A DNA stretch of 64,000 nucleotides from Neoechinorhynchus agilis (Eukaryota > Animalia > Acanthocephala): assembly GCA_051530055.1 (NCBI GenBank), contig CM121342.1, positions 9,749,480 to 9,813,479 of the forward strand, read 5' to 3'. How positions within the stretch are numbered: the stretch's first letter is position 1; every line of letters starts with the position of its first letter. Positions 708 to 26,520 of this stretch are shown in pieces. The translations under genes and the position numbers were made by a program. The notes under the pieces are model-generated. The model was not told the DNA's origin, did not search any database, and saw nothing but the letters and a program-made list of their open reading frames with translations.

Positions 708-1387
708 TTGAATTAATAAATCAAACTTCGTTATAGCAATTAAGTTTGTAAAAACCATTAAAAGTTGAAAAATCTTCACGATTACAATGTAGCGACATTT
801 TTGCGCTGAAATTTATTTGAAGATTTATATCTTAACATTTAAAAATTTTTGAATGGTTTTCGAACATCATCCCGGCTCGCACCAGTTATTGTAAATAAAT
901 CTAATCGACTTAATATTTACCATCCCGAAGGATCTTCTTGATATGATTATTTAAGAAATGTGTCGAGACTAGCGAATAAATTAGCAGTCCGTTGTTATAG
1001 TCGTACCCAAGGACCATTGGTATAAAATTAGAAACCGTTTTCATAGCAGTGGAGTTTACAAATTTCACCTTCTCCTGGCGTGGAAATTTTTTTATTTAAA
1101 AAACAAAGGTGCACGTATAGGACACAATCAGTCAAAGTCTACGATGCTCACTTTTCTTCTAGAAAAAGAATCGCTTGGAAATTCGCAATTTAGGAATTGA
1201 ATTTGTTTTAAATTGCCCATCGATATATTTGAATATTTTCAGGCTTAAATATCGATCGCAATTTCGAAATTAAAAACAAAATTTTAAACGTTTTTCCTCC
1301 GCACCAACTTTAGGACGGCTGTAATCTTACGAGGTTAAAGCATAAGTAAATTTAGACTTTTATGTTATCAGAACAAATCTAGTCAGT

Positions 1388-1777
1388 CTTTCTTTTTCTT
1401 AGTTTTGCCACCCCGGGGATTTAAATTCACTAATTTATTTCCCCGATATTTGACCTCTCGGATAATTCCGACATTTTCCCAAAGTTTGTCATTGCAGCAA
1501 CCCGGGTGGCAAAACTACCAAAAGAAAGAATATTTTTATATGGCACTGAAAAAAGCGAAGGATTTTTGTTAAATCCAATTATTTTCACAGGCGCAATCTT
1601 GAACGCGTTTTTTGATCATAGCTCGGACTCAATAAATTCCCATTTATTTTTCCGTCGAATTCTATGTTAAAACACTTACTCGACAAACCTTGGGAAAATG
1701 TCGGAATTATTCGACGTGAAATATCGAAAATAAATTAATGAATTTAAATCGGGTTGGCAAAACTTAGAAAAAGAAAG
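1388..1777. mobile_element. MITE-like element with about 100-bp imperfect terminal inverted repeats
   Basis: 1388-1490 is the approximate reverse complement of 1682-1777; no ORF inside. Confidence 0.65.
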
Positions 1778-2504
1778 TCTCTTTTCCTCCGAAGACAATA
1801 ATTCAAGAAATATAGTCGATTTGAACTTTATAGGGCCTTAGTTTTTAGTATGTAATCTGAAAAGATTAAAGCTTAAGATTTTTTTTACGTCGAACGTTTC
1901 AAACCCCTTATTTGTAAGGCACAATATTGACATTTTGAGGCATTCAATTTCAGAGTTTGTTCTTTAAAAAAGAAGTTTAGGTTCACAACTTATTAAAATA
2001 ACTTCAATTTTAAGGCTGTAATCTTAAAAGCTTGAAACGTTAAATCGTTTTAAGAGCTATTCAAAGAACGCTTATTTCTAATACGTAATTTTAAAACATT
2101 AAGGCACCAGAATGCAGAATCTTCGATAACGCAATCATGAAAAGCTGAAGCTCAAGGATTTGTTTTTAAAAAATCCGATGAGTTTATCTTTAAAAGACAA
2201 TCTAGAAATTTTTAAACGAAACTATCTAAAATCAGTAACGCCATTCTTCAACCATAGCCCTCAGACAGAATTTAATAAATTTAAAATGAAATATTGAACA
2301 CGCAAAAACAACGTTGCTCACGCAAACTTATTAAAGTTGATGTTATTAACGGAAAGCTCAACGCAGATCGTTCAATTTGATATTCTCTTACTTTTCTTCT
2401 CTAATAATCACATTATTCACAAAAATGACATTTGTCACGGGAAAGAACTCGTTTCCTCTAAACGATTGAACACCGCTTGCAGATCAATATTCCACGCGCT
2501 CACA

Positions 2505-5275
2505 ATGTTCAATGTGAACTCAAAACTGTTCAAGCGTGCAATCGATTTGCCAACGCTTGCTCGATCCGCTTCAAGGATTCCCCATCTAACCAAGAAGAGG
2601 GCACTTGGTTTCGTTACTGCATTAGCTATACCCGGCGCAATCTTTTATGGATACAACCGGCGTAAATCCGGTCAAACCATCAAGGCTGCATATCATGTTG
2701 ATCCTTCAGTCCATCTTAAGGAGTTACAATCTGATTTGGCTGGACGGCAGGAGCAATGGATGGTAACTGGGACGGTAAGTGTTCCCAGTGACGTAGGCTT
2801 GAAATGCAATCTCAAAATACAAAAGTGTTTTTGAAATTCTAAACATACTATAAAGAACCAATAGAACTACTGAGATTTTATATATTTAGTTTTTGATTCT
2901 CAAAAGTTTTTAGCTAACGTTTTCCCATAGAATTTACTTAAAAGAACTCACTTTTCAATCAAAGTAATTTTGTTTAAGAATTTATTCATTCCGATATTTC
3001 TGAACCACAATCTTGTACGCGTTTATCAATGTTGTAAATAAATCTAATCGATTGATAAACGCGTACAAAATTGTGCTTCTGAAATATCGGAATCAATAAA
3101 TTCTTTTCATTTTTCCGCCACATAAAAACATGAACAATTCAATCAAAGTAATTTTTTACTTAGGATCTCATTTGGGTGGTTAGATATGTAATTATATTAG
3201 TAGATCATCAACACCCGAGAAGGAATGTATTTTCCACTGATTGCATCCGCCTTCTTTAATGATCTCTCTCGTATGTTGACAAGCGACTTAAATGATAACA
3301 TAAAGTAAATTTATTATCTAATCCGGTAAAAATGAAGAAAATATATTCTAATTTTTGGTTTCAATAGGCCTTTTTTACAGCGGTTTATTTTTCTTCTTAA
3401 ATCGCGAAAGCCTCATCAAATCAAATTTTTCTCCAGAATTTTAAAGAAAACAAAATTGTTACAAAATCACAAGTGTTATTAAGGTTTTCCCCCGGTAAAT
3501 AATTTTTATTAAAGACGTTTCGAACATAGTAAGGGGTTCATCATTAGTTCTAAAAACCAAGTGGTGAAATGAAATTTGTTCAATAAAATAATCTTCCTGA
3601 ATTCTCAAGATTTTCTTCAATCCTTTTATCTTCCTACTAATTAAAATTCTTTAAAAGACTTCACTTCTCGCGTTAAGCACTAAGAAGAGTATTTAGATCT
3701 TGAATGGAGGAGGGATGAAGAGCGTCTTTGGTCATTTGACCCTCTACCAATACTGCTCCTGTCCATTCTGTTGTAAAGTTCGCGCCTATCTGGATTATCA
3801 TGGCGTCGACTATGATTTCGTCGAAGTTGATCCTTTGTCGAAATCAACGATGACTTGGTCACATTATAAAAAGGTACCTGTTCTAGTCTTGGAAAATGAT
3901 GAATTGGTTAGTTTATTCTCTATTTGAAGAAACATCAATTCCCTCTTTATATCGTAGCCTCTTAACGATTCAAGTTTGATTATGAGCGTCCTAGAGGCGA
4001 AGAGACGCAATCCAACATTGAATTTCGCCTCACTCGTTCAACAGTTTCCACTTTACATTCAAAAGTTTAAGAATGGGAAACGGAAATATACTTACTCTGA
4101 TATTTATCAGTTACCATTCACGAGGAAGTAAGTATTATATTGCGGAAGGAAACATTTACAGCCGATAGCGCAGGTCTGTCGTTAAAACTAGTTGAATTTC
4201 ACTTTGCTATTTTCGTTGGGTTTTTAATTTTTGAGCCTATGCTCTGACTTGCGAATTTCGAAATTGTTTTTTGCTAAACTCTGGAATGTTTAAACATGAA
4301 TTTTAATGTTTTTATGACGAAATAATTGAAGGAATTTATCGGATCCGATATTTAGGAGTCACAATATTCTACTCCTTTATCAAAGTTACTTGAACGTTTT
4401 CTAATATGTAGGTTACTTTCAAACAACCTTAATAAAGGAGTACAATATTGTGCGCCGAAATATTGGTTTTAATAATTCCTTCATTTTTTGCCACGAAAAA
4501 ATATGAACAATTCAATTTTCAAACAAGAATTTTGACGGTTGCCTTTTAGTGTTTTTAGATTAAAACAGTGAGAAATTGTTCGAGTTGTCAATATTCTCGG
4601 TCTTAAGAAAACAAATGATATTAAAGTTCAATGTTTTAAACCCGATTTCGTTTCACAGAAAAATCGTTGTACTCTTATATAATAATATGAAATTCAAGCA
4701 TGAATTAAAAATTAACAATCGGTGTGATTTAAGAGCATAGAAGAAATCGTCATCGACTGGATGATTGAAATCTATATTTTATGCCTTTAAATACATAAAT
4801 GCTCTTAATTTTAGGCACAAAACGTATCGTCGATTTCTTTTTCTCATTTAGAGGAGCACAAAGTGACTTGGAAATATATTGGAGGGAATGGGTCGACAAA
4901 TCACTCGTTCCGACGATCGGTCTTAGTGTCTACAGCTCGCTTTCCAACTCACTTGACGCATTTCGTTATTTCGCATCTACTGGAGATTGGCCTAAGACTC
5001 TTGGTAGCCAGACTCGATCATCGTTCGTAGTGTACTCTGGTGCCGTTGCTATGTGGATCGTGAGTAAATTAAGACAAAGGAGGAAAGATGCGATTGATCC
5101 TAAACAAGTATTTGAACAACTTTGTGATAGACTCAAAGAATCGAATTATGGATTTATTAGTGAGCACTCGGCACCTAGTCTCGCGGATCTAAGTGCGTTT
5201 GGAGTGCTAAAATCCATTGAAGGCTGTAGGACTTTTAGCAAGTTGATTGAACAAGATGAAGTCTTACTCTATTAA
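2505..5275 (+). CDS. PTGES2: Prostaglandin E synthase 2 (glutaredoxin/GST fold), multi-exon
   Basis: N-terminal hydrophobic anchor exon (about 2505-2775); LTLYQYCSCPFCCKVRAYLDYHG and YKKVPVLV (3.7-3.9 kb); LNDSSLIMSVL (3960); WREWVDKSLV...YSGAVAMWIVSKLR...PSLADLSAFGVLKSIEG (4.85-5.27 kb). The C-terminal exon boundary is uncertain. Confidence 0.9.
2976..3105. repeat. Foldback hairpin, 55-bp arms with a 20-nt loop
   Basis: 2976-3030 versus 3051-3105: reverse complement with 4 mismatches. Similar elements at about 4330-4490 and 20444-20565. Confidence 0.8.
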
Positions 5276-5646
5276 ATAAAATCTACACCTAATCCGCTTC
5301 TTAAAAAGTTGTCTTAGTTTATACATTCTCGAGCCAAGATGCTGCTCTCAGAAATTTATTCAAGTAAACCAATACATTTGCGTAAATATTGCCATAAACG
5401 AGACTTCATGTAACCATTAATGTCCTTTTATTAACTTAATAACGGGCCGTTAAGAAATTTCTAATTAAATCGTGGATTTCTCATGATACATCGCTGCCAA
5501 TTTTAACCATTACAGCCAATCAGTTTTATTGCCAACGCGCTATTCTTTTAAATTTCGTATGACCAGTGTTGTAAGCGCAATTTTTTGGCATCCATTCAGA
5601 AAGCAATAAGTACAGAAATTGTTAAAGAAAGTTCCATACAAATGAA

Positions 5647-8600
5647 AGGAATTTGATTTAACGTCCGTATTTCCGAGTGATTTGCTCTTAATCACTAATG
5701 ATTGATTGTTGTATAAAAATAATAAAGCTCTGCAGGGCATTTAAATTTTGATTTTTTGTTTGTAGAATTTGAATTTCTGATTGATTCGCTCTTTATCACT
5801 AATGATTGATTGTTGTATAAAAACAAAAAAGCACTGGAGGGTATCTAAATTTTGATTTTTTAAGAATTTGATTCAACGACCGGATTTCTAAGTGATTCGC
5901 TCTTAATGACCAATGAGTGACCGTTCTATAAAAACAATAAAGCTCTGGAGGGCATCTCAATTTTGTTTTTTTAAGAATTTGATTTAACGTTCGGATTTCT
6001 TTGCGATTCGCTCTTAATCACTAATGATTGATTATTGTATAAAAACAATAAAGCTCTGGAGGGCATCTAAATTTTTATTTTTTAAGAAATTTATTTAACG
6101 TCCTTATTTCTTAGTGATTCGATCTTAATGACTAGAGGGGGCCGTTCTATAAAAACAATAAAGCTCTGCAAGGCATTTAAATTTTGATTTTTTTAAGAAT
6201 TTGATTTAACGTTCATATTTCTTAGTGATTTGCTCTAAACTATAAAGCTCAGCAAGGTATTTAAATTTTGATTTTTTAAGAATTCTATTTAACGTTCGTA
6301 TTTCTGAGTGATTCGCTCTAAATCACCAATGATTGATTATTGTATAAAAACTATAAAGCTCTGGAAGGCGTTTAAATTTCGATTTTTTAAGAATTTGATT
6401 TGACGTCCGTATTTCTGAGTGATCCGCTATAAATCACAAATGATTGATTGTTGTATAAAAACAAAAAAAGCACTGGAGGGTATCTAAATTTATATTTTTT
6501 AAGATTTTGATTCAACGAACGGATTTCTAAGTGATTCGCTCTTAATGACCAATGAGTGACCGTTCTATCAAAACAATAAAGCTCTGGAGGGCATCAAAAT
6601 TTCGATTTCTTAAGAATTTGATTTAACGTCCGGATTTCTTTGCGATTCGCTCTTAATCACCAATTAGTGACCGTTCTATCAAAACAATAAAGCTCTGGAG
6701 GGCATCCAAATTTTGATTTCTTAAGAATTTGATTTAACGTCCGGATTTCTTTGCGATTCGCTCTTAATCACCAAGAGTGACCGTTCTATCAAAACAATCA
6801 TCAAAATTTCGATTCTAAATTTTGATTTCTTAAGAATTTGATTTAACGTCCGTATTTCTGAGTGATTTGCTCTTAATCACCAATGACTGACCGTTCTATC
6901 AAAACAATAAAGCTCTGGAGGGCATCAAAATTTTGATTTCTTAGGAATTTGATTTAACGTCCGGATTTCTTTGCGATTCGCTCTTAATCACCAATTAGTG
7001 ACCGTTCTATCAAAACAATAAAGCTCTGGAGGGCATCAAAATTTCGATTTCTTAAGAATTTGATTTAAAGTCCGGATTTCTTTGCGATTCGCTCTTAATC
7101 ACCAAGAGTGACCGTTCTATCAAAACAATAAAGCTCTGGAGGGCATCAAAATTTCGATTTCTTAAGAATTTGATTTAACGTCCGGATTTCTTTGCGATTC
7201 GCCTCTTAATCACCAAGAGTGACCGTTCTATCAAAGCAATAAAGCTCTGGAGGGCATCCAAATTTTGATTTCTTAAGAATTTGATTTAACGTCCGGATTT
7301 CTATGCGATTCGCTCTTAATCACCAAGAGTGACCGTTCTATCAAAAAATAAAGCTCTGGAGGGCATCAAAATTTCGATTTCTTAAGAATTTCATTTAACG
7401 TCCGGATTTCTTTGCGATTCGCTCTTAATCACCAAGAGTGACCGTTCTATCAAAACAATAAAGCTCTGGAGGGCATCCAAATTTTGATTTCTTAAGAATT
7501 TGATTTAACGTCCGGATTTCTTTGCGATTCGCTCTTAATCACCAAGAGTGACCGTTCTATCAAAACAATAAAGCTCTGGAGGGCATCAAAATTTTGATTT
7601 CTTAAGAATTTGATTTAACGTCCGGATTTTTTTGCGATTCGCTCTTAATCACCAATGAGTGACCGTTCTATCAAAACAATAAAGCTCTGGAGGGCATCAA
7701 AATTTCGATTTCTTAAGAATTTGATTTAACGTCCGGATTTCTTTGCGATTCGCTCTTAATCACCAAGAGTGACCGTTCTATCAAAACAATAAAGCTCTGG
7801 AGGAGGGCATCCAAATTTACGATTTCTTAAGAATTTGATTTAACGTCCGGATTTCTATGCGATTCGCTCTTAATCACCAAGAGTGACCGTTCTATCAAAA
7901 ATAAAGCTCTGGAGGGCATCAAAATTTCGATTTCTTAAGAATTTGATTTAACGTCCGGATTTCTTTGCGATTCGCTCTTAATCACCAAGAGTGACCGTTC
8001 TATCCAAACAATAAAGCTCTGGAGGGCATCCAAATTTTGATTTCTTAAGAATTTGATTTAACGTCCGGATTTCTTTGCGATTCGCTCTTAATCACCAAGA
8101 GTGACCGTTCTATCAAAAAACAATAAAGCTCTGGAGGGCATCTAAATTTTGATTTCTTAAGAATTTGATTTAACGTCCGGATTTCTTTGTGATTCGCTCT
8201 TAATGACCAATGAGTGACCGTTCTATAAAAACAATAAAGCTCTGGAGGGCATCTAAATTTTGATTTCTTAAGAATTTGATTTAACGTCCGGATTTCTTTG
8301 TGATTCGCTCTTAATGACCAATGAGTGACCGTTCTATCAAAACAATAAAGCTCTGGAGGGCATCCAAATTTTTATTTCTTAAGAATTTGATTTAACGTCC
8401 GGATTTCTTTGCGATTCGCTCTTAATCACCAAGAGTGACCGTTCTATCAAAACAATAAAGCTCTGGAGAGCATCAAAATTTCGATTTCTTAAGAATTTGA
8501 TTTAACGTCCGGATTTCTTTGCGATTCGCTCTTAATCACCAATGAGTGACCGTTCTATCAAAACAATAAAGCTCTGGAGGGCATCAAAATTTTGATTTCT

Positions 8601-10862
8601 TAAGAATTTGATTTAACGTCCGGATTTCTTTGCGATTCGCTCTTAATCACCAATGAGTGACCGTTCTATCAAAACAATAAAGCTCTGGAGGGCATCAAAA
8701 TTTTGATTTCTTAAGAATTTGATTTAACGTCCGGATTTCTTTGCGATTCGCTCTTAATCACCAATGAGTGACCGTTCTATCAAAACAATAAAGCTCTGGA
8801 GGGCATCCAAATTTCGATTTCTTAAGAATTTGATTTAACGTCCGGATTTCTTTGCGATTCGCTCTTAATCACCAATGAGTGACCGTTCTATCAAAACAAT
8901 AAAGCTCTGGAGGGCATCAAAATTTTGATTTCTTAAGAATTTGATTTAACGTCCGGATTTCTTTGCGATTCGCTCTTAATCACAAGAGTGACCGTTCTAT
9001 CAAAACAATAAAGCTCTGGAGGGCATCAAAATTTTGATTTCTTAAGAATTTGATTTAACGTCCGGATTTCTTTGCGATTCGCTCTTAATCACCAAGAGTG
9101 ACCGTTCTATCAAAACAATAAAGCTCTGGAGGGCATCAAAATTTTGATTTCTTAAGAATTTGATTTAACGTCCGGATTTCTTTGCGATTCGCTCTTAATC
9201 ACCAATGAGTGACCGTTCTATCAAAACAATAAAGCTCTGGAGGGCATCCAAATTTTGATTTCTTAAGAATTTGATTTAACGTCCGGATTTCTTTGCGATT
9301 CGCTCTTAATCACCAAGAGTGACCGTTCTATCAAAACAATAAAGCTCTGGAGGGCATCAAAATTTTGATTTCTTAAGAATTTGATTTAACGTCCGGATTT
9401 CTTTGCGATTCGCTCTTAATCACCAAGAGTGACCGTTCTATCAAAACAATAAAGGTCTGGAGGGCATCAAAATTTCGATTTCTTAAGAATTTGATTTAAC
9501 GTCCGGATTTCTTTGCGATTTGCTCTTAATCACCAATGAGTGACCGTTCTATCAAAACAATAAAGCTCTGGAGGGCATCAAATTTTGATTTCTTAAGAAT
9601 TTGATTTAACGTCCGGATTTCTTTGCGATTGTCTTAATCGCAATAGGTGACCGTTCTATCAAAGCAATAAAGCTCTGGAGGGCATCAGAATTTCGATTTC
9701 TTAAGAATTTGATTTAACGTCGGATTTCTTTGCGATTCGCTCTTAATCACCAATGAGTAGCCGTTCTATCAAAACAATAAAAACGGGGGCATCGGGAATT
9801 TTTATTTCTTAAGAATTTGATTTAACGTCCGGATTTCTTTGCGATTCGCTCTTAATCACCAAGAGTGACCGTTCTATCAAAACAATAAAGCTCTGGAGGG
9901 CATCAAAATTTCGATTTCTTAAGAATTGTATTTAACGTCCGGATTTCTTTGCGATTCGCTCTTAATCACCAATGAGTGACCGTTCTATCAAAACAATAAA
10001 GCTCTGGAGGGCATCCAAATTTTGATTTCTTAAGAATTTGATTTAACGTCCGGATTTCTTTTTACTGCCGATTCGCTCTTAATCACCAATGAGTGACCGT
10101 TCTATCAAAACAATAAAGCTCTGGAGGGCATCCAAATTTCGATTTCTTAAGAATTTGATTTAACGTCCGGATTTCTTTGCGATTCGCTCTTAATCACCAA
10201 TGAGTGACCGTTCTATCAAAACAATAAAGCTCTGGAGGGCATCCAAATTTTGATTTCTTAAGAATTTGATTTTACGTCCGGATTTCTTTGCGATTCGCTC
10301 TTAATCACCAAGAGTGACCGTTCTATCAAAACAATAAAGCTCTGGAGGGCATCAGAATTTTGATTTCTTAAGAATTTGATTTAACGTCCGGATTTCTTTG
10401 CGATTCGCTCTTAATCACCAATGAGTGACCGTTCTATCAAAACAATAAAGCTCTGGAGGGCATCAAAATTTTGATTTCTTAAGAATTTGATTTAACGTCC
10501 AGTTTCTTTGCGATTTCATCTTAATCACCAATGAGTGACCGTTCTATAAAACCAATAAAGCTCTGGAGGGCATCTAAATTTTGATTTCTTAAGAATTTGA
10601 TTTAACGTCCGTATTTCTGAGTGATTTGCTCTTAATCACTAATGAGTTACCGTTCTATCAAAACGATGAAGCTCTGGAAGGCATCTAAATTTTGATTTCT
10701 TAAGAATTTGATTTAACGTCCGGATTTCTGAGTGATTTGCTCTTAATCACTAATGAGTTACCGTTCTATCAAAACGATGAAGCTCTGGAGGGCATCTAAA
10801 TTTTGATTTCTTAAGAATTTGATTTAACGTCCGGATTTCTTTGTTATTCGTTCTTAATCACT
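5647..10862. repeat. Tandem satellite, 110-111 bp unit, about 47 copies
   Basis: Unit GCTCTGGAGGGCATCAAAATTTTGATTTCTTAAGAATTTGATTTAACGTCCGGATTTCTTTGCGATTCGCTCTTAATCACCAA(T)GAGTGACCGTTCTATCAAAACAATAAA; copies at 7023 and 7133, for example. Confidence 0.97.
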
Positions 10863-11580
10863 AAACAAGTGCACGATTGTTTTTTCTTCGTTTGAACTTT
10901 AATCGTTTCTACATGTCTCGCAGTAACTTGTCTGTGACCTTTTTGATACAATGTTTTATATAAAAAGGTTCAATGAATTGTGGATGATCTCATTAGGGAA
11001 AATGGTTCGCAATCAATATAAGTACTCACGTTAAGCTTTAAATATGAGATTGCTAATTTTGTTTCGCTGATTGTCTAATTGATCTTAAATAAAACGTAGT
11101 CATTTTTTCTAAATCTTATATGGCCGATCACCTTGCTATAAATAGATAAACCCAAATCGATCTTTAAGCAGACTTGCGACGCTTCATTAAAAAAATTAAA
11201 TATCGAACTTTGTGCCAAATACAAATATGCCGAATTCACACAATAAAAACTTGTGATTTGTTTCTCGTTATCAAAATTATCTCTTCAGCTCAATGTATGA
11301 CTTATAAAAAGTTCACTAATAACTATTTTTAGTGAGATTTCTTAGTGGCTAACACTTTAGTCGCTAATTTGAAAGATATTTAGGATGCTCTCGCTTTATT
11401 TATTTTTTCATTTCAAATAAAAATGTCAATTAAAGTTAGTACTGAGAGAAGAGCAAAAAATGGACAAGGAAAAAGTCTACTGATTTTTTTCCTTTATACA
11501 AAACCAAGACGGTTGACTGAGAGCAAATACTCTATTCTCGAAGCATAATAAAAACAGTTTACAAAATCGCTAATAGAACA

Positions 11581-13110: not shown

Positions 13111-14375
13111 TATTGAACATCCCTCCGGATCCTCAGATATTCTCCGAGGAGGCAGGGCTCACCAGTGAATTTCCTTAATTCAGCAATATTTCGTTTCCTT
13201 TGGTTATGAGTCAACGGCGATAATGGATCTTGAACCTTTTGACTCGGAAACAGAGAACTTCGCCCCAACTACAGAACGTACAAACCCTCCCAGATTTAAA
13301 CCTTGGGTAATTGTTTAAATATTTTTATCTTTAATCTGGCTAGCCGGTTACTTTTTATTCAGTGTTGAAGTGTCCTTCCCTTCCATGGCTAATTATTTTC
13401 CTCTGACACACAATTCACCGATATCTTGGATCAGGGAAGCACATAAAATCACTTAATACCCGTGACCATACGGCCAAGAGTTTGTACGCATCCCTCCGGA
13501 TCCTCAGATATTCTCCGAGAAGGCAGAGCTCATCATCGAATTTCCTTCCCTTCAGCAATATTTCGTTTCCTTTGGTTATGAGTCAACGGCGATAATGAAT
13601 CTTGAAACTTTTGACTGGGAAACAGGGAACCTCGCCAAAACTGCAGAACGTACAAACCCTCCAAGATTTAAACCTTGGGTAATTGTTTAAATATTTTTAT
13701 CTTTAATCTGGCTAGCCGGTTACTTTTTATTCAGTGTTGAAGTGTCCTTCCCTTCCATGGCTAATAATTTTCCTCTGACAAACAACCCACCGATTTCTTG
13801 GATCAGGGAAGCGCATAAAACCAATTAATGCCCGCGACCGTACGGCCAAGAGTTTGTACGCATCCCTCCGGATCCTGAGATATTCTCCGAGGAGACAGAG
13901 CTCACCAGTGAATTTCCTTCCTTCAGCAATATTTCGTTTCATTTGGTTATGAGTCAACGGCGATAAATGATCTTGAACCTTTTCTCGGAAACAGAGAACT
14001 TCGCCACAACTGCAGAACGTACAAACCCTCCCAGATTTAAACCTTAGGTAATTGTTTAAATATTTTTATCTTTAATCTGGCTAGCCGGTTACTTTTTATT
14101 CAGCGTTGAAGTGTCCTTCCCTTCCATGGCTAATTATTTTCCTCTGACACACAATTCACCGATATCTTGGATCAGGGAAGCGCATAAAACCATTTAATAC
14201 CCGCGACCATACGGCCAAGAGTTTGTACGCATCCCTCCGGATCCTCAGATATTCTCCGAGAAGGCATAGCTCACCATCGAATTTCCTTCCTTTAGCAATA
14301 TTTCGTTTCCTTTGGTTATGAGTCAACGGCGATAATGAATCTTGAAACTTTTGACTGGGAAACAGGGAACCTCGC
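13111..14375 (-). mobile_element. Tandem array (about 3.4 units, 369-372 bp period) of the same hammerhead-bearing repeat, with degenerate cores
   Basis: CCCTCCGGATCC at 13121, 13492, 13864 and 14233. The minus strand reads GAAAC-GAAA-TATT..TTCA-CTGGTGA-GCCCT..AATA-TC-TGAGGATCC. The array is cut at 14375 by the LTR insertion. Confidence 0.85.
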
Positions 14376-14494
14376 TGTGATATTGAGCGTCACAATTGAC
14401 CGATCAATAGTGGCGGTTTCAAGTGTGCGCACGTACGTTTTGTTATTTCGTTTGGTTGGCTCAATAAAACCTAGTTCAGGCATATATTATAACA
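14376..14494 (+). repeat. 5' LTR (119 bp, TG...CA) of a Gypsy element
   Basis: TGTGATATTGAG...TATTATAACA, repeated with a few changes at 16609-16738; AATAAA at 14463-14468. Confidence 0.85.
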
Positions 14495-14525
14495 ATTTAT
14501 TGAGCCAACCTCCTATTCGAATTCT

Positions 14526-15437
14526 ATGGAGGACGAAAAATCTCTATTGGACGATTCAACCAGTTCATGTCAAAGAATGAACCCCAACTTTAAAATCGAA
14601 CGGTTCAATACGTTACCGCATGAAAACGGTTCGGCGAAAAGATTCAAATTGTGGAAAAGAAACCTCAAGTACTTCATACAATCGGTCAACAACAAGGATG
14701 ACAAACTCGAGTACCTATTTGCCAATATTGGACCGGATGTATTTGAGCTTGTCGAGGAAGCCCAAAGTTTTGACGATGCGTTCTCCACCTTGGTAAAGCT
14801 CTATGTTAACAAACCAAATGTTGTATTGACTCGACATTTGCTCGCCACTCGCAAACAGCTGGATTCGGAGGACATCGATCAATACGTCTTGAGCTTAAGG
14901 AGCATCGCTCGTGATTGTGGCTTCAAGACATCTAGTGGAGAAGACATCAAAGATGAATCCATCCGAGATGCATTTATTGCTGGGATCAAATCGAGTAACA
15001 TAAGGGGAAGATTGTTGGAAATCGAGGATTTGACCCTATCAAAGGCTATCACGATCTCGAAAAGTATCCAATGTGCGGTAGATGGTTTGGAACAATTCGA
15101 TGACAGTAAAACCAGCCAATGCTTACGCAGTTTAACCGTCGCTGATTCTACCTTTGCTGATTCGATAACTGAAAATCTGAATTGCAACGCTGCCATGGCT
15201 AGCGGTAAGAACGAGGGATTTTCCGGTGGATCAATATGCTTTTTCTGTGGGAATAAGCGACATCCCAGAAACCTATGTCCTGCTAACGAAGCCAGGTGTT
15301 ATAACTGCCAAAATAGTGGGCATTTCGCTAAGATGTGCAGATCCAAAAACCCAATAAGGCCGAACTATCGTCCGTTTTTCTTGCTTGAACTACGTATGAT
15401 GGCCCTTCGAAACCGACCTAGCTGGAAATCCCAGTAA
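14526..15437 (+). CDS. Gag-like protein of the Gypsy element
   Basis: 303-aa ORF with RKQLDSEDIDQYVLSLRSIARDC, IRDAFIAGI, CFFCGNKRHPRNLC and CYNCQNSGHFAKMC. Confidence 0.85.
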   Translation: MEDEKSLLDDSTSSCQRMNPNFKIERFNTLPHENGSAKRFKLWKRNLKYFIQSVNNKDDKLEYLFANIGPDVFELVEEAQSFDDAFSTLVKLYVNKPNVVLTRHLLATRKQLDSEDIDQYVLSLRSIARDCGFKTSSGEDIKDESIRDAFIAGIKSSNIRGRLLEIEDLTLSKAITISKSIQCAVDGLEQFDDSKTSQCLRSLTVADSTFADSITENLNCNAAMASGKNEGFSGGSICFFCGNKRHPRNLCPANEARCYNCQNSGHFAKMCRSKNPIRPNYRPFFLLELRMMALRNRPSWKSQ

Positions 15438-15942
15438 CGATTCAAAACAAGACGTTTCAAGCCTTACTCGATACCGGTAGCTCTCTCAATTTCATCGACA
15501 ACATCACCTCAAAGAAACTTAATCTTGTTTCAGAGCCTGCATGTATGAATGTTTCTATGGCATCCGGACGTGCAACAAAGCGGGCGCTAGGAAAGACCTA
15601 TACCAAAGTACAGTATAAGGAGGAGAATACTGAAAACTTAGAATTCTATATATTGCCTGACTTATGCTGTGACATTATCTTGGGCTTGCCCTTTATCAAA
15701 CTACACAAGGAATTACGAGTAAAACTGAATGGAGGGGGAAACATTCTCGAATTGACAGCCGCCGTTACCGATCATACATCAAGCGAGACCATATTCAGTC
15801 CGACCCTTTTCGAAAATTTGAGCGCCGATTGCCATCGCCACGAAATCTAGATCGTATTTTGGAACGGATTTTCAATTTATCAAATCGGAGATAGGACGTG
15901 TGCTTAAAGATGATATTATAGAAACTTCAAACTCGCCGTGCC

Positions 15943-16518
15943 GTGCTCAAGTTGTCCTTGGTAAAAAAGAAAACGACAAAAAACGTCGACTTTTCTCAAA
16001 CGATAAATAGGTTTACATACTTGGATGCCTACGCGTTACCGAAAATTGAAACCATAGTTAATGATATCGCAAAGAATACAGTGTTTAGTCAAATTGACTT
16101 GAAGGATGCATACTATCAAGTTCCGATAGACGCCAAAGAGAGAAATTATACGTCCTTCGAAGCTTGCGGAAGATTATACCGATTCAAGAAAATTCCCATG
16201 GGAGTCACGAATGTCGTGGCCGTGTTCCAACGCTTTATGAATCACATCATCGAAGAAAATAAACTCGCAAATACTTATTCGTATTTGGATGATGTAGTCA
16301 TACGTGGGAAGATCCAACAAGAACACGATCAAAATCTTGAACGTTTCAAGGAAGCGGTGACCAAGAGAGGGCTGAAACTAAACGGCTCGAAAAGCCGATA
16401 TGGACTCAAAAGAGCTTTTGTGCTAGGATACGAAATCGGGGATGGACAATTAAGCCCTGACCCTAACAGACTTAAGCCTCTCAACGACATAAAATATACA
16501 TTAATACTGGGGATCTAA
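15943..16518 (+). pseudogene. Gypsy reverse transcriptase fragment
   Basis: LPKIETI, FSQIDLKDAYYQV, PMGVTN, YLDD. Separated from gag/protease by frameshifts and ends prematurely. Confidence 0.85.
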
Positions 16519-16608: not shown

Positions 16609-16982
16609 TGTGATATTGAGCTCCACAATTGACCGATCAATAGTGGCGGTTTCAAGTGTGCGCACGTTTGTTTTGTTATTTCGTTTCGTTGGCGCAATAA
16701 AACCTAGTTCAGGTCTAGTTCAGGCATATATTATAACAATTTATTGAGCCAACCTCCTATTCGAATTCTATGGAGAACGAAAAATCTCTATTGGACGATT
16801 CAACCAGTTCATGCCAAAGAATGAACCCCAACTTTAAAATCGAACGGTTCAATACGTTACCGCATGAAAACGGTTCGGCGAAAAGATTCAAATTGTGGAA
16901 AAGAAACCTCAAGTACTTCATACAATCGGTCAACAACAAGGATGACAAACTCGAGTACCTATTTGCCAATATTGGACCGGAC
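16609..16982 (+). mobile_element. Second copy of the same Gypsy 5' end (130-bp LTR, PBS region, gag start), truncated
   Basis: LTR at 16609-16738 with an 11-bp internal duplication, followed by TTTATTGAGCCAACC and gag to IGPD. No polypurine tract precedes it, so it is a second 5' LTR and not the 3' LTR of the first copy. Confidence 0.85.
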
Positions 16983-21685: not shown

Positions 21686-24049
21686 TTAATATTGATCATC
21701 GTCATCCTTGCGTTCTTCGATTTGCTCTCCACTAACGACTTCGAATCCTCGATCTGGATTTTCTTCAGCTTGCTCAGCAATGTCCTGCTGCTGATCATCA
21801 TCACCATCATCGTATTGTTCATAATCGGCATTTACAACATTACTTACCTCGTCGGGCACATAATCGGCCAAATTTAAGCGATTGTCTGAATTGGAATAAT
21901 TGTACGAGGAAGAAGATCGTACATCGACTGCTCCATGGGACTGAAATTCTTCGTTTTGGTTGTCAGCGACCCATCCATCGCCATAACCATCGCCATCACC
22001 GCCCTCAGTAAAAAACGACGGAACCTTCTGTTTAGCGTCTTTAAGAATGCCAATAAGGCCACTTGTCATCTCCGCACACTTTGGATCGCTTTTATCGTAG
22101 AAAGTGATTGACCTTCCTGGGTTTCCGCATCGACCAGTTCGACCGATTCTATGGACGTACTCAGTGAGTTCGTTCGGCATATCGTAATTTATGACATTAT
22201 CAACTCCTGGAACATCGAGACCGCGAGCTGCTACATTAGTTGCGACCATACATCGGGCTTTTCCATTCACAAACGCATTCAGCGCTTCTTCTCGTTCTTT
22301 TTGTAGTCGATCTCCGTGGATGGTAGTGGTCACGTATCCAGACTGACTAAGATCACTCGCTAAGAAGTCAGCGAACTTTTTTTGTCCGACGAAAATCAAT
22401 GTTTTAGTGTTGCCCAATTCCGTGAGGATTTCTTTTACCTTTGAACGTTTTGTTGTTCGATCTACTTCAACAAACTCTTGTGAGACATCTACACATGCTC
22501 CACCAATGATTCCTGTGGAGATGAAAATATAGTCTTTTTTAAGATAAGACTGGGCGAGTTTCTGGACATCGGTTGGGAATGTAGCTGAGAACATCATTGT
22601 TGATCGGTCCGATGCAAGCTTCCCAATTTTAGCAATATCCGCAATATCAATCTCGAAGCCCATATCGAGCATTCGATCTGCTTCATCGAGTACAAAGTAT
22701 CGGCAATTGGAGAATTCAACGAATCCACGTTTAACAAAATCCAACAGTCTACCAGTGGTCGCAAAAACGATATGACATCCCATTCGAAGTTGGCCGTATT
22801 GATGAGAAGTAGCAACACCGCCGTATAACATTGTTGTCTTAATTTTGGATTTAAATCCTAATCGATTGCAAGTTTGATAGGTTTGTCTTACCAACTCACG
22901 TGTTGGCATAAGAACCAACGCAAAGGGTCTAACAGGCAAAGGCGAAGTGTCCGCTTCGATTTCATTTGTGAGCAGATCGTGTAAGATAGGCAATAAGAAA
23001 GCTGCCGTCTTTCCACTGCCAGTTTGAGCACAAGCCATAAGATCACGACGGTGTTCCATTATGATTGGTAAAGCGTATCTTTGAACCGGTGTTGGAACTG
23101 CAAATTTCGATTTCCGGATATTCGACAATAGAAGATCATGAAGACCTGAGTCCACGAATTGATCATACGGTTCAACATCACCGCCCGTAACATTTACTTG
23201 TACGCTTGAATATTTGCTAAAATTGATTCCTTGACGTATTCCTAGGGAAAAAAGAGCAGGTTCCGTTCGTTCGATTTCTTCGGGAATGTATGTTACCGGA
23301 GGAGGACGACTCTCCAAATCTTGACTAGGACCCCAACTCGTTTCATTACTTTCAACTTGTGGCTTATCGTTGTTTTGATTAGACCATCCTTTTCGATCAT
23401 TCCAATTTGATTTATCATCACCACCATTATAATAATCATTTTTACTTCGATTACTTTCATTTTGCCTAAGATTACCCGTTTTCCATCCAGAATTATCTCT
23501 TCTATCCAAACGATCATCATCATCTCGTCCCCAACCACTTGAACGTCCCTCTTGATTTTCACGTCTACTAACTGGTTGATCATTATTATGATGGGCGTGA
23601 TGGTTGCCATACCCGCGAGTACCATTTGACCGATCATCCTGATCGGCATTTGAATTCCAATGCGAACTATTTGACCGAGATTGATCATACTTACGCCCAC
23701 GATCATCGACTTCATATTGATCATCTCGTCTATTGTGAAATGGACGACTTTGATACGGCCCACCACCGTATCCACCGCGACCTTCATTAGGCCTAGGTCG
23801 ATTTTGATTTGAATGTTCGACCGGACGTATTCGTCGTTGATCGTCGTTCCGTCCACCAAAATCATTGTTCTTTAATCTATATTGACCTTCGTCCTCCCAT
23901 CTTCTACTCATCCCATCGTCCTGTCGATGATTGCCCTGATCGTTGTTTTGATTAGAACGCTGACCAGAACCCCATCCAACATTTCGTTCTCGGCTAAAAC
24001 CCGTCGGTCTGCCCCATACGCCGTCAGCCGAATCACCATGTGAATCCAT
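21686..24049 (-). CDS. vasa: Vasa DEAD-box RNA helicase (start at 24049 or 24076)
   Basis: GINFSKY, PTPVQ, AQTGSGKT, PTREL, DEADRMLDMGF, SAT, GGACVDVSQ, ARGLD, HRIGRTGRCGN; low-complexity R/G/D/N N-terminus and acidic C-terminus. Confidence 0.88.
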   Translation of the reverse strand: MDSHGDSADGVWGRPTGFSRERNVGWGSGQRSNQNNDQGNHRQDDGMSRRWEDEGQYRLKNNDFGGRNDDQRRIRPVEHSNQNRPRPNEGRGGYGGGPYQSRPFHNRRDDQYEVDDRGRKYDQSRSNSSHWNSNADQDDRSNGTRGYGNHHAHHNNDQPVSRRENQEGRSSGWGRDDDDRLDRRDNSGWKTGNLRQNESNRSKNDYYNGGDDKSNWNDRKGWSNQNNDKPQVESNETSWGPSQDLESRPPPVTYIPEEIERTEPALFSLGIRQGINFSKYSSVQVNVTGGDVEPYDQFVDSGLHDLLLSNIRKSKFAVPTPVQRYALPIIMEHRRDLMACAQTGSGKTAAFLLPILHDLLTNEIEADTSPLPVRPFALVLMPTRELVRQTYQTCNRLGFKSKIKTTMLYGGVATSHQYGQLRMGCHIVFATTGRLLDFVKRGFVEFSNCRYFVLDEADRMLDMGFEIDIADIAKIGKLASDRSTMMFSATFPTDVQKLAQSYLKKDYIFISTGIIGGACVDVSQEFVEVDRTTKRSKVKEILTELGNTKTLIFVGQKKFADFLASDLSQSGYVTTTIHGDRLQKEREEALNAFVNGKARCMVATNVAARGLDVPGVDNVINYDMPNELTEYVHRIGRTGRCGNPGRSITFYDKSDPKCAEMTSGLIGILKDAKQKVPSFFTEGGDGDGYGDGWVADNQNEEFQSHGAVDVRSSSSYNYSNSDNRLNLADYVPDEVSNVVNADYEQYDDGDDDQQQDIAEQAEENPDRGFEVVSGEQIEERKDDDDQY

Positions 24050-24311
24050 GTTGGAGTTTGGTCGATGGCATTGCATCTTAAAAAAAGAACACTCAAACTT
24101 TATACATCAACAACAACAAAGCAAGTGAGCACAACAAATAACCTTTCAAACTTTCAAGAAGTTTAACTCAATCACACTCATGTGCATACCCATAAATTCA
24201 AAGGAGAAAAATACAAACACACTTAACGGCGAAAAACAAAACACACCACATGAGATTATGGTGCGAAGGATACTGAGGTAATGTGCATATGATTCTTCCG
24301 GATACGAGTCA

Positions 24312-26520
24312 TTCTTTCGATGACGTCACATCTACAAATTCAAAGGGCCTTTTTTTGATGAACGTTCCTTTAAGGCTAGAAAATTTAAAAATTCGCTTCC
24401 TCCTAACCTAAACTTTATAGTGATTTTAAAAAGTTGGGTGTTATTCTTTCGATGACGTCACATCTACAAATTCAAAGGGCCTTTATTTGATGAACGTTCC
24501 TTTAAGGCTAGAAAATTTAAAAATTCGCTTCCTCCTAACCTAAACTTTATAGTGATTTTAAAAAGTTGGGTGTTATTCTTTCGATGACGTCACATCTACA
24601 AATTCAAAGGGCCTTTATTTGATGAACGTTCCTTTAAGGCTACAAAATTTAAAAATTCGCTTCCTCCTAACCTAAACTTTATAGTGATTTTAAAAAGTTG
24701 GGTGTTATTCTTTCGATGACGTCACATCTACAAATTCAAAGGGCCTTTTTTGATGAACGTTCTTTAAGGCTAGAAAATTTAAAAATTCGCTTCCTCCTAA
24801 CCTAAACTTTATAGTGATTTTAAAAAGTTGGGTGTTATTCTTTCGATGACGTCACATCTACAAATTCAAAGGGCCTTTATTTGATGAACGTTCCTTTAAG
24901 GCTAGAAAATTTAAAAATTCGCTTCCTCCTAACCTAAACTTTATAGTGATTTTAAAAAGTTGGGTGTTATTCTTTCGATGACGTCACATCTACAAATTCA
25001 AAGGGCCTTTTTTGATGAACGTTCTTTAAGGCTACAAAATTTAAAAATTCGCTTCCTCCTAACCTAAACTTTATAGTGATTTTAAAAAGTTGGGTGTTAT
25101 TCTTTCGATGACGTCACATCTACAAATTCAAAGGGCCTTTATTTGATGAACGTTCCTTTAAGGCTAGAAAATTTAAAAATTCGCTTCCTCCTAACCTAAA
25201 CTTTATAGTGATTTTAAAAAGTTGGGTGTTATTCTTTCGATGACGTCACATCTACAAATTCAAAGGGCCTTTTTTTGATGAACGTTCCTTTAAGGCTAGA
25301 AAATTTAAAAATTCGCTTCCTCCTAACCTAAACTTTATAGTGATTTTAAAAAGTTGGGTGTTATTCTTTCGATGACGTCACATCTACAAATTCAAAGGGC
25401 CTTTTTTTGATGAACGTTCCTTTAAGGCTAGAAAATTTAAAAATTCGCTTCCTCCTAAACTAAACTTTATAGTGATTTTAAAAAGTTGGGTGTTATTCTT
25501 TCGATGACGTCACATCTACAAATTCAAAGGGCCTTTTTTTGATGAACGTTCCTTTAAGGCTACAAAATTTAAAAATTCGCTTCCTCCTAACCTAAACTTT
25601 ATAGTGATTTTAAAAAGTTGGGTGTTATTCTTTCGATGACGTCACATCTACAAATTCAAAGGGCCTTTATTTGATGAACGTTCCTTTAAGGCTAGAAAAT
25701 TTAAAAATTCGCTTCCTCCTAACCTAAACTTTATAGTGATTTTAAAAAGTTGGGTGTTATTCTTTCGATGACGTCACATCTACAAATTCAAAGGGCCTTT
25801 TTTTGATGAACGTTCCTTTAAGGCTAGAAAATTTAAAAATTCGCTTCCTCCTAACCTAAACTTTATAGTGATTTTAAAAAGTTGGGTGTTATTCTTTCGA
25901 TGACGTCACATCTACAAATTCAAAGGGCCTTTATTTGATGAACGTTCCTTTAAGGCTACAAAATTTAAAAATTCGCTTCCTCCTAACCTAAACTTTATAG
26001 TGATTTTAAAAAGTTGGGTGTTATTCTTTCGATGACGTCACATCTACAAATTCAAAGGGCCTTTTTTTGATGAACGTTCCTTTAAGGCTAGAAAATTTAA
26101 AAATTCGCTTCCTCCTAAACTAAACTTTATAGTGATTTTAAAAAGTTGGGTGTTATTCTTTCGATGACGTCACATCTACAAATTCAAAGGGCCTTTATTT
26201 GATGAACGTTCCTTTAAGGCTAGAAAATTTAAAAATTCGCTTCCTCCTAACCTAAACTTTATAGTGATTTTAAAAAGTTGGGTGTTATTCTTTCGATGAC
26301 GTCACATCTACAAATTCAAAGGGCCTTTATTTGATGAACGTTCCTTTAAGGCTACAAAATTTAAAAATTCGCTTCCTCCTAACCTAAACTTTTTAGTGAT
26401 TTTAAAAAGTTGGGTGTTATTCTTTCGATGACGTCACATCTACAAATTCAAAGGGCCTTTTTTTATGAACGTGTCGCTGAGGTTTTAAAATTAAAACGTC
26501 GCATCTTCCTAACTTAAACT
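24312..26520. repeat. Tandem satellite, 132-bp unit, about 17 copies, each with TGACGTCA
   Basis: GATGACGTCA at 24319, 24451, 24583 ... 26427; units are near-identical. Confidence 0.97.

Follow-up and report, generated by a model that had tools for sequence, protein, structure and literature searches.

A candidate self-priming gypsy lineage in Neoechinorhynchus agilis, with a primer-binding site complementary to its own LTR

The 64-kb window (the whole stretch of Neoechinorhynchus agilis DNA analysed here) contains two partial copies of a single LTR retrotransposon family, designated family A. The features of both are collected in Table 1. In copy 1, a single base, A (14495), separates the end of the LTR from the 15-mer TTTATTGAGCCAACC, and the poly(A) hexamer AATAAA (14463-14468) makes up the last six bases of the LTR arm with which that 15-mer can pair. 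The gag ATG lies at 14526, giving a leader of 31 nt in which 14496-14510 is the sole candidate for a primer-binding site (PBS). Copy 1 is truncated within the reverse transcriptase (RT) at approximately 16518 and lacks RNase H, integrase and a 3' LTR. Its protease region (15438-15942) has no match in Pfam. Copy 2 consists only of an LTR, a PBS and approximately 210 nt of gag, and no polypurine tract precedes its LTR (16609). Searches with Rfam (E values up to 0.1) and ARAGORN returned no match in the element region.

Table 1. Features of the two family A copies, in window positions. MFE, minimum free energy.
Feature	Position	Strand	Description
5' LTR, copy 1	14376..14494	+	119 nt, TGTGATAT...TATAACA; direct repeat with 16609-16738
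LTR arm, copy 1 (candidate self-primer)	14454..14468	+	GGTTGGCTCAATAAA; 15/15 complement of 14496-14510; arm-PBS covariation across 11 families
Loop, copy 1	14469..14495	+	27 nt; LTR remainder 3' of the hexamer plus 1 nt; loop in the MFE fold
Putative PBS, copy 1	14496..14510	+	TTTATTGAGCCAACC; complementary to own LTR, not to a tRNA 3' end; no TGG
gag ORF, copy 1	14526..15437	+	303 aa; two adjacent CX2CX4HX4C zinc knuckles
Decayed protease region, copy 1	15438..15942	+	Frameshifts and stops; equivalent stretch of copy L020 matches Asp_protease_2
Reverse transcriptase fragment, copy 1	15943..16518	+	PF00078, E 1.2e-24
LTR of truncated copy 2	16609..16738	+	130 nt, with 11-nt loop duplication
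LTR arm, copy 2	16687..16701	+	2 mismatches to copy 2 PBS
Putative PBS, copy 2	16740..16754	+	Identical to copy 1 PBS
gag 5' fragment, copy 2	16770..16981	+	Direct repeat D8, 99% identity; homology to copy 1 stops at 16981

Upstream of copy 1, a tandem repeat with a unit of approximately 372 nt (3-4 units, 65-93% identical) occupies 13118-14375 and reaches the LTR start, which places copy 1 within a satellite or at its edge. The copy L002 (C2:10044138) shares its 5' flank with copy 1, and its LTR resembles that of copy 2, a mixture that suggests segmental duplication or gene conversion. Elsewhere in the window there are satellite arrays at 8000-10920 (110-111-nt unit, approximately 26 copies) and at 24236-26511 (132-nt unit, 16 copies), and many units of both are 98-100% identical. 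The minus strand carries an uninterrupted 796-codon ORF (21686-24076) for a vasa/DDX4-like DEAD-box RNA helicase with DEAD and Helicase_C domains, whose Atlas neighbours are named vasa/DDX4.

Approximately 18 LTR copies of family A are present in the 46-Mb genome. Target site duplications (TSDs) of 5 bp (ACCAG, CCGGG, CAGAA and CGACG) surround solo LTRs and full copies, lying directly outside TGTGAT...ATAACA. These duplications fix the LTR ends, and the PBS therefore begins exactly 1 nt past the LTR, the spacing that the earlier note on this DNA had given. The full copies (L019, L020 and L021) are 3.6-3.9 kb long; their LTRs measure approximately 119-130 nt, and the 3' LTR is preceded by a G-rich polypurine tract. 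In L019 and L020, Pfam identifies zf-CCHC, Asp_protease_2, RVT_1, RT_RNaseH and rve, in that order; the element is a Ty3/gypsy LTR retrotransposon with the order gag-PR-RT-RNase H-IN. Every family A copy has frameshifts or stops, and identity within LTR pairs is 95-98%. Family A is an old family with only dead copies in the N. agilis genome.

The observation from which the analysis set out, that the PBS at 14496-14510 is the perfect 15-nt reverse complement of the LTR segment at 14454-14468, was reproduced by an inverted-repeat search as well as by reading the sequence: the arms match at 15 of 15 positions and lie 27 nt apart. When up to two mismatches are allowed, the 15-mer occurs four times in the window, against 0.19 expected, a number reached in none of 100 shuffles, and all four occurrences fall on the arms of copies 1 and 2. 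Approximately 280 internal control windows of 24 nt from the same element are complementary to the LTR over no more than 9 nt. Copy 2 was likewise correctly described as keeping its PBS while differing at two positions in the LTR segment; the two mismatches that result are decay. Most family A copies have C, not G, at the position equivalent to 14454, so the duplex at the level of the family is 14 nt long. Seven decayed 5' copies retain 13-15 of the 15 arm-PBS pairs. In most copies, an 11-nt duplication extends the loop to 38 nt.

Relatives of family A were picked by protein homology, with an RT-RNase H query against the same genome and a protein search of public data, and not by the presence of a hairpin. 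Within the genome, four further families, B, C, D and E, were resolved with both LTRs. Family B (69% amino acid identity to family A) has the arm CGTTAGCTAAATAAA, which pairs at 15 of 15 positions with the sequence 1 nt past its LTR; family E (59%) has GTTTTGTTTAATAAA, with 15 of 15 pairs and a 13-nt loop. The two families at 46% identity carry arms of other lengths, TTTTTCAAGTTGAATAAA in family C (17 of 18 pairs) and TACTGTAATTAAA in family D (13 of 13). Beyond this genome, the protein search finds relatives at 43-50% amino acid identity in many animal phyla. The genomic sequence around ten of these proteins, eleven places in all, was fetched from public data, and six were resolved: those of Nematostella vectensis, the leafhopper Macrosteles, the moth Achroia, the tapeworm Sparganum, the schistosome Trichobilharzia and one ENA assembly. 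Places without a clean LTR pair (Trichinella L056, Xenia L060, Achroia L061, and ENA L103 and L105) were left unscored.

In all six resolved relatives, the sequence that begins 1 nt past the terminal CA is perfectly complementary to an LTR segment over 13-18 nt. A complement at this exact spacing is seen in 12 of 12 resolved elements, from the five families here and the six relatives, so the loss of complementarity among relatives that the earlier note had named as the outcome that would count against its proposal is not what is seen. The LTR arm ends in AATAAA, ATTAAA or AGTAAA in every case, extending one base past the hexamer in Macrosteles. Internal control windows across these elements reach no more than 8-11 nt, compared with the 13-18 nt at the PBS position. 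LTRs range from 69 to 220 nt and loops from 13 to 93 nt across the lineage. The gag ATG follows the LTR end at a distance of 16-34 nt; family B and Trichobilharzia have a PBS that touches or overlaps this start codon. Leaders this short leave no room for another PBS, and a TGG-type PBS was found in none of the resolved elements.

The quality of the pairing follows the age of the copies. Where the two LTRs are 100% identical (Sparganum, Achroia, L104 and Trichobilharzia), the duplex consists of 14-18 perfect pairs; young copies are perfect in their arm-PBS pairing, and old ones are decayed. Several of the relatives combine identical LTRs with uninterrupted reading frames. One distant family of the same genome, L110 (approximately 30% amino acid identity), served as a negative control and has no LTR-leader inverted repeat. 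This element (G000:C2:9981300-9988300, approximately 1206-5560) has LTRs of approximately 94 nt and one uninterrupted 1372-codon ORF, and its leader carries a direct repeat of a 16-nt string that includes the AATAAA of the element. As a separate observation, the LTRs of families C and D start with TGACGT; their 5' tips (L038 68-75; L045, minus strand) read TGACGTAA or TGACGTGC, which is CRE/bZIP-like.

Covariation was assessed in an alignment of 11 families anchored at both arms. Watson-Crick pairs are formed in 99.3% of its 143 cells. Changes on both sides are seen in 10 of the 13 pairs, with 31 compensatory cells, and the covariation score was reached by none of 500 shuffles. Sliding the partner by 1-3 columns lowers the pairing to 29-48%. 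The compensatory LTR/PBS changes that the earlier note had suggested looking for in related families are thus present.

The arm-PBS duplex is part of the MFE structure of all eight leader RNAs that were folded, with z-scores from -1.65 to -4.5. These folds consist of the central duplex with small local hairpins in the loop, such as a small CCU/AGG hairpin in copy 1, and pairing of the PBS-adjacent sequence with the LTR was not seen in them. The hexamer is directly followed by GCC and a small hairpin (GCC...GG[C/U]) in the relatives from other phyla except Macrosteles (L057, L059, L062, L104 and L106), and families A and B have ACC...GG at the matching spot (window 14469-14480). The short stem that is predicted to stack on the primer-PBS duplex in the folds may be a recognition element.

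Experimental proof of self-priming in reverse transcription exists only for Tf1 and its nearest relatives, and the trait is regarded as a hallmark of the Tf1/sushi group. Tf1/sushi chromoviruses carry a C-terminal chromodomain on the integrase, and the present lineage shows none: PF00385 was detected neither in eight proteins of the lineage (E value 0.01) nor among the precomputed domains of the best 120 matches. The element is not a Tf1/sushi chromovirus. Further differences from that group are the ending of the primer in the hexamer, the LTR lengths of 69-220 nt, the leaders of 16-34 nt, the distribution over several animal phyla and the two CCHC knuckles. The primer duplex of Tf1 is reportedly 11 nt long, and that of this lineage, at 13-18 nt, is longer. 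Tf1 also needs a three-duplex 'pretzel', which is not evident in the MFE folds here. The likenesses are nonetheless close. Tf1, Tf2 and Tj1 of fission yeasts, together with Tf1/sushi elements, also have no tRNA PBS, and a sequence in their 5' LTR complements a PBS just downstream; the fold-back geometry is the same, and the duplex would be cut at its loop-side end (PMC4600332, PMC10085805). Self-priming has been proven for Tf1 and inferred for Tf1/sushi elements, plant Tcn1 and copia TAR elements (PMC4600332, PMC10085805, PMC6317226). For plant Tcn1 chromoviruses and the Ty1/copia TAR elements (Houba and Osr-1), it was predicted, as here, from LTR-PBS complementarity alone (PMC6317226); these belong to other superfamilies or clades with plant hosts, and no link to the poly(A) hexamer has been described for them.

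Resemblance also extends to the Mag lineage (Mag, SURL/C-clade and Jule), which likewise consists of compact animal elements with two adjacent knuckles and no chromodomain (PMC5408684). The Mag-like gag with two CCHC knuckles that the earlier note had described was found, in the form of two adjacent CX2CX4HX4C motifs. The termini of the family A LTR, TGTGATAT...ATATAACA, fit the Mag C motifs TGTNATRT...AYANAACA (PMC3601003 Table 3); family B nearly fits them, and families C and D do not. Mag LTRs also carry a clear AATAAA (PMC3601003). Knuckles, chromodomain absence, compactness, animal hosts and LTR termini are together consistent with a Mag-like element. A full-text literature search, with the original Mag and Jule papers outside it, returned no report of self-priming or of an LTR-complementary PBS for the Mag lineage.

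Pairing that is kept with different letters in four sister families and six relatives suggests that the lineage probably self-primes with its own RNA. The earlier note had proposed priming without a tRNA from a PBS complementary to the element's own LTR, possibly as an independent system with a predicted transcription start near 14454, and the core of this proposal, the tRNA-free priming, is strengthened by the covariation across five families and six relatives and by the lack of a tRNA-type PBS. The complement sits at the PBS position that the mechanics of reverse transcription demand. What we infer, rather than observe, is that the arm is contained in the transcript, that the RNA is cut, and which copy of the arm (5' or 3') serves as primer. 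The explanation that we favour, and which the comparative data make probable, is Tf1-like self-priming in a Mag-like animal gypsy lineage without a chromodomain, with the hexamer inside the primer duplex.

In the model that follows, the 13-18-nt LTR RNA segment that ends in the hexamer would fold back onto its complement 1 nt past the LTR. An RNase H-type cut right after the hexamer would leave a 3'-OH, which RT would extend across the remainder of the LTR (the 13-93-nt loop) to give strong-stop DNA; in copy 1, the template of this minus-strand strong-stop DNA would be the 27-nt loop at 14469-14495. The strong-stop DNA would then move to the RNA 3' end, where the same sequence lies between the hexamer and the poly(A) site, and the primer would be copied back into the progeny PBS during plus-strand synthesis. 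Since the primer would be copied into the PBS, arm and PBS would be re-matched in each cycle, which would produce covariation between families. The cleavage of an RNA duplex for self-priming has been demonstrated only for the Tf1 RT (PMC4600332, PMC10085805).

Own-RNA priming could also begin from the copy of the arm in the 3' LTR, in the same or a co-packaged RNA, and the 5' transcript may then start downstream of the arm. The two arm copies are indistinguishable by sequence, no promoter motif was found conserved at a fixed distance upstream of the arm in a by-eye comparison (neither a TATA nor an initiator), and in Trichobilharzia a TATAAAA-like string overlaps the arm. However, such priming would require an extra strand transfer that is without precedent, and the proven Tf1 primer is the 5' end (PMC4600332). 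In family D, the arm starts at nt 17 of an LTR of approximately 69 nt, so the space for an upstream promoter is tiny, and a transcript starting near the LTR 5' end would include the arm. Priming from the 3' arm is for these reasons unlikely, if the best of the alternatives.

Retroviruses suppress the poly(A) site in the 5' LTR, and the poly(A) hairpin of HIV-1 is one example. As in the HIV-1 poly(A) hairpin, the hexamer of the present elements is contained in both LTR copies and is base-paired in the 5' leader; unlike in HIV-1, its partner is the PBS, a sequence that the 3' end does not have, and masking may be the consequence. The duplex in the 5' LTR would hide the hexamer, and since there is no PBS after the 3' LTR, the 3' hexamer would stay free. 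It may be that the duplex is purely regulatory, as a mask for the 5' poly(A) site or as a packaging or dimerisation signal, and that another primer is used. The arm always ends at the hexamer (plus one base in Macrosteles), which priming alone does not require. Yet masking needs no exact 1-nt offset from the LTR, and 12 of 12 elements show one; the leaders have no room for a second PBS, and none of the TGG type is present. A solely regulatory role accordingly has only a slim chance of being correct. Masking and priming are moreover compatible, and the favoured explanation joins them: as a speculation, the constant inclusion of the hexamer, which is not needed for priming, may also serve to mask the 5' poly(A) signal.

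The PBS was also compared with host tRNAs, represented by 40 genes of this genome, a sample that includes none for Ala, Asp, His, Leu, Phe, Pro or Val. The best match to the family A leader is a run of 12 consecutive nt, GGTTGGCTCAAT, which equals nt 5-16 of one tRNA-Lys(UUU) gene (C2:8351839-8351911, L063), in the acceptor and D arm, and window positions 14454-14465. In 300 trials with random 32-mers of the window, a match of at least 11 nt came up only 3 times, so this one should not be lightly set aside. The remaining Lys(UUU) genes read GGTTAGCTCAAT, sharing 10 of 12 bases with the family B arm. The earlier expectation that the PBS would match no host tRNA is thus borne out for tRNA 3' ends among the 40 genes, but not for internal fragments, given this 12-nt match. 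A genome-wide pattern search with the 15-mer (at most one mismatch) found only element copies and three non-tRNA loci. As an aside, an exact 16-nt copy of the PBS with the base before it, ATTTATTGAGCCAACC, occurs at L107 (G000:C2:13685330-13685630, 143-158) within otherwise unrelated, non-tRNA sequence; approximately 0.02 such chance matches are expected in the genome.

On this basis, the primer of family A could be a 5' piece of tRNA-Lys(UUU) that results from cleavage in the D-loop at approximately nt 16 and anneals to ATTGAGCCAACC (14499-14510), and priming by half-tRNAs does exist in copia-type elements (PMC6317226). The fit to the PBS is nevertheless poorer than that of the element's own LTR. 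Three PBS bases adjoining the LTR are left unpaired by the tRNA and are paired by the LTR arm, and the match stops short of the tRNA 5' end, where the PBS continues with TCCT and not GGGC. Family B fits its own LTR at 15 of 15 positions and the tRNA at 10 of 12; families C, D and E have no match longer than 7 nt in the 40 tRNA genes, and for families B-E no consecutive match exceeds that length. A tRNA primer would also leave the presence of the same sequence in the LTR unexplained, and we know of no retroelement that uses a 16-nt D-loop fragment. Such a primer is thus very improbable, and the likeness between tRNA-Lys and the arm could be coincidental or could be left over from tRNA-derived sequence. 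A chance inverted repeat, for which only the AT-rich composition of the hexamer end speaks, deserves next to no credence and is refuted by the comparative data, namely the shuffles and controls above and the recurrence of the pairing at the same position with different letters in 12 of 12 elements.

Self-priming from the element's own LTR therefore stays the preferred reading. A broader proposal, that a gypsy lineage of several animal phyla (cnidarians, flatworms, insects and this worm among the hosts), standing apart from Tf1/sushi, self-primes through one 13-18-bp helix that both makes the primer and silences the 5' poly(A) signal, is more tentative, and we put it forward as a possibility that we would not yet back. 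If it is true, tRNA-free priming would be common in animal retrotransposons and not a peculiarity of Tf1/sushi. A second, chromodomain-less self-priming lineage would point either to repeated origin or to an ancestral state, and some models of LTR-element origin do propose ancestral self-priming (PMC3601003). Such a lineage would also explain the failure of annotation pipelines based on a tRNA PBS on these very abundant compact elements. It would be a simple natural case of a single helix that may link priming with the choice of poly(A) site.
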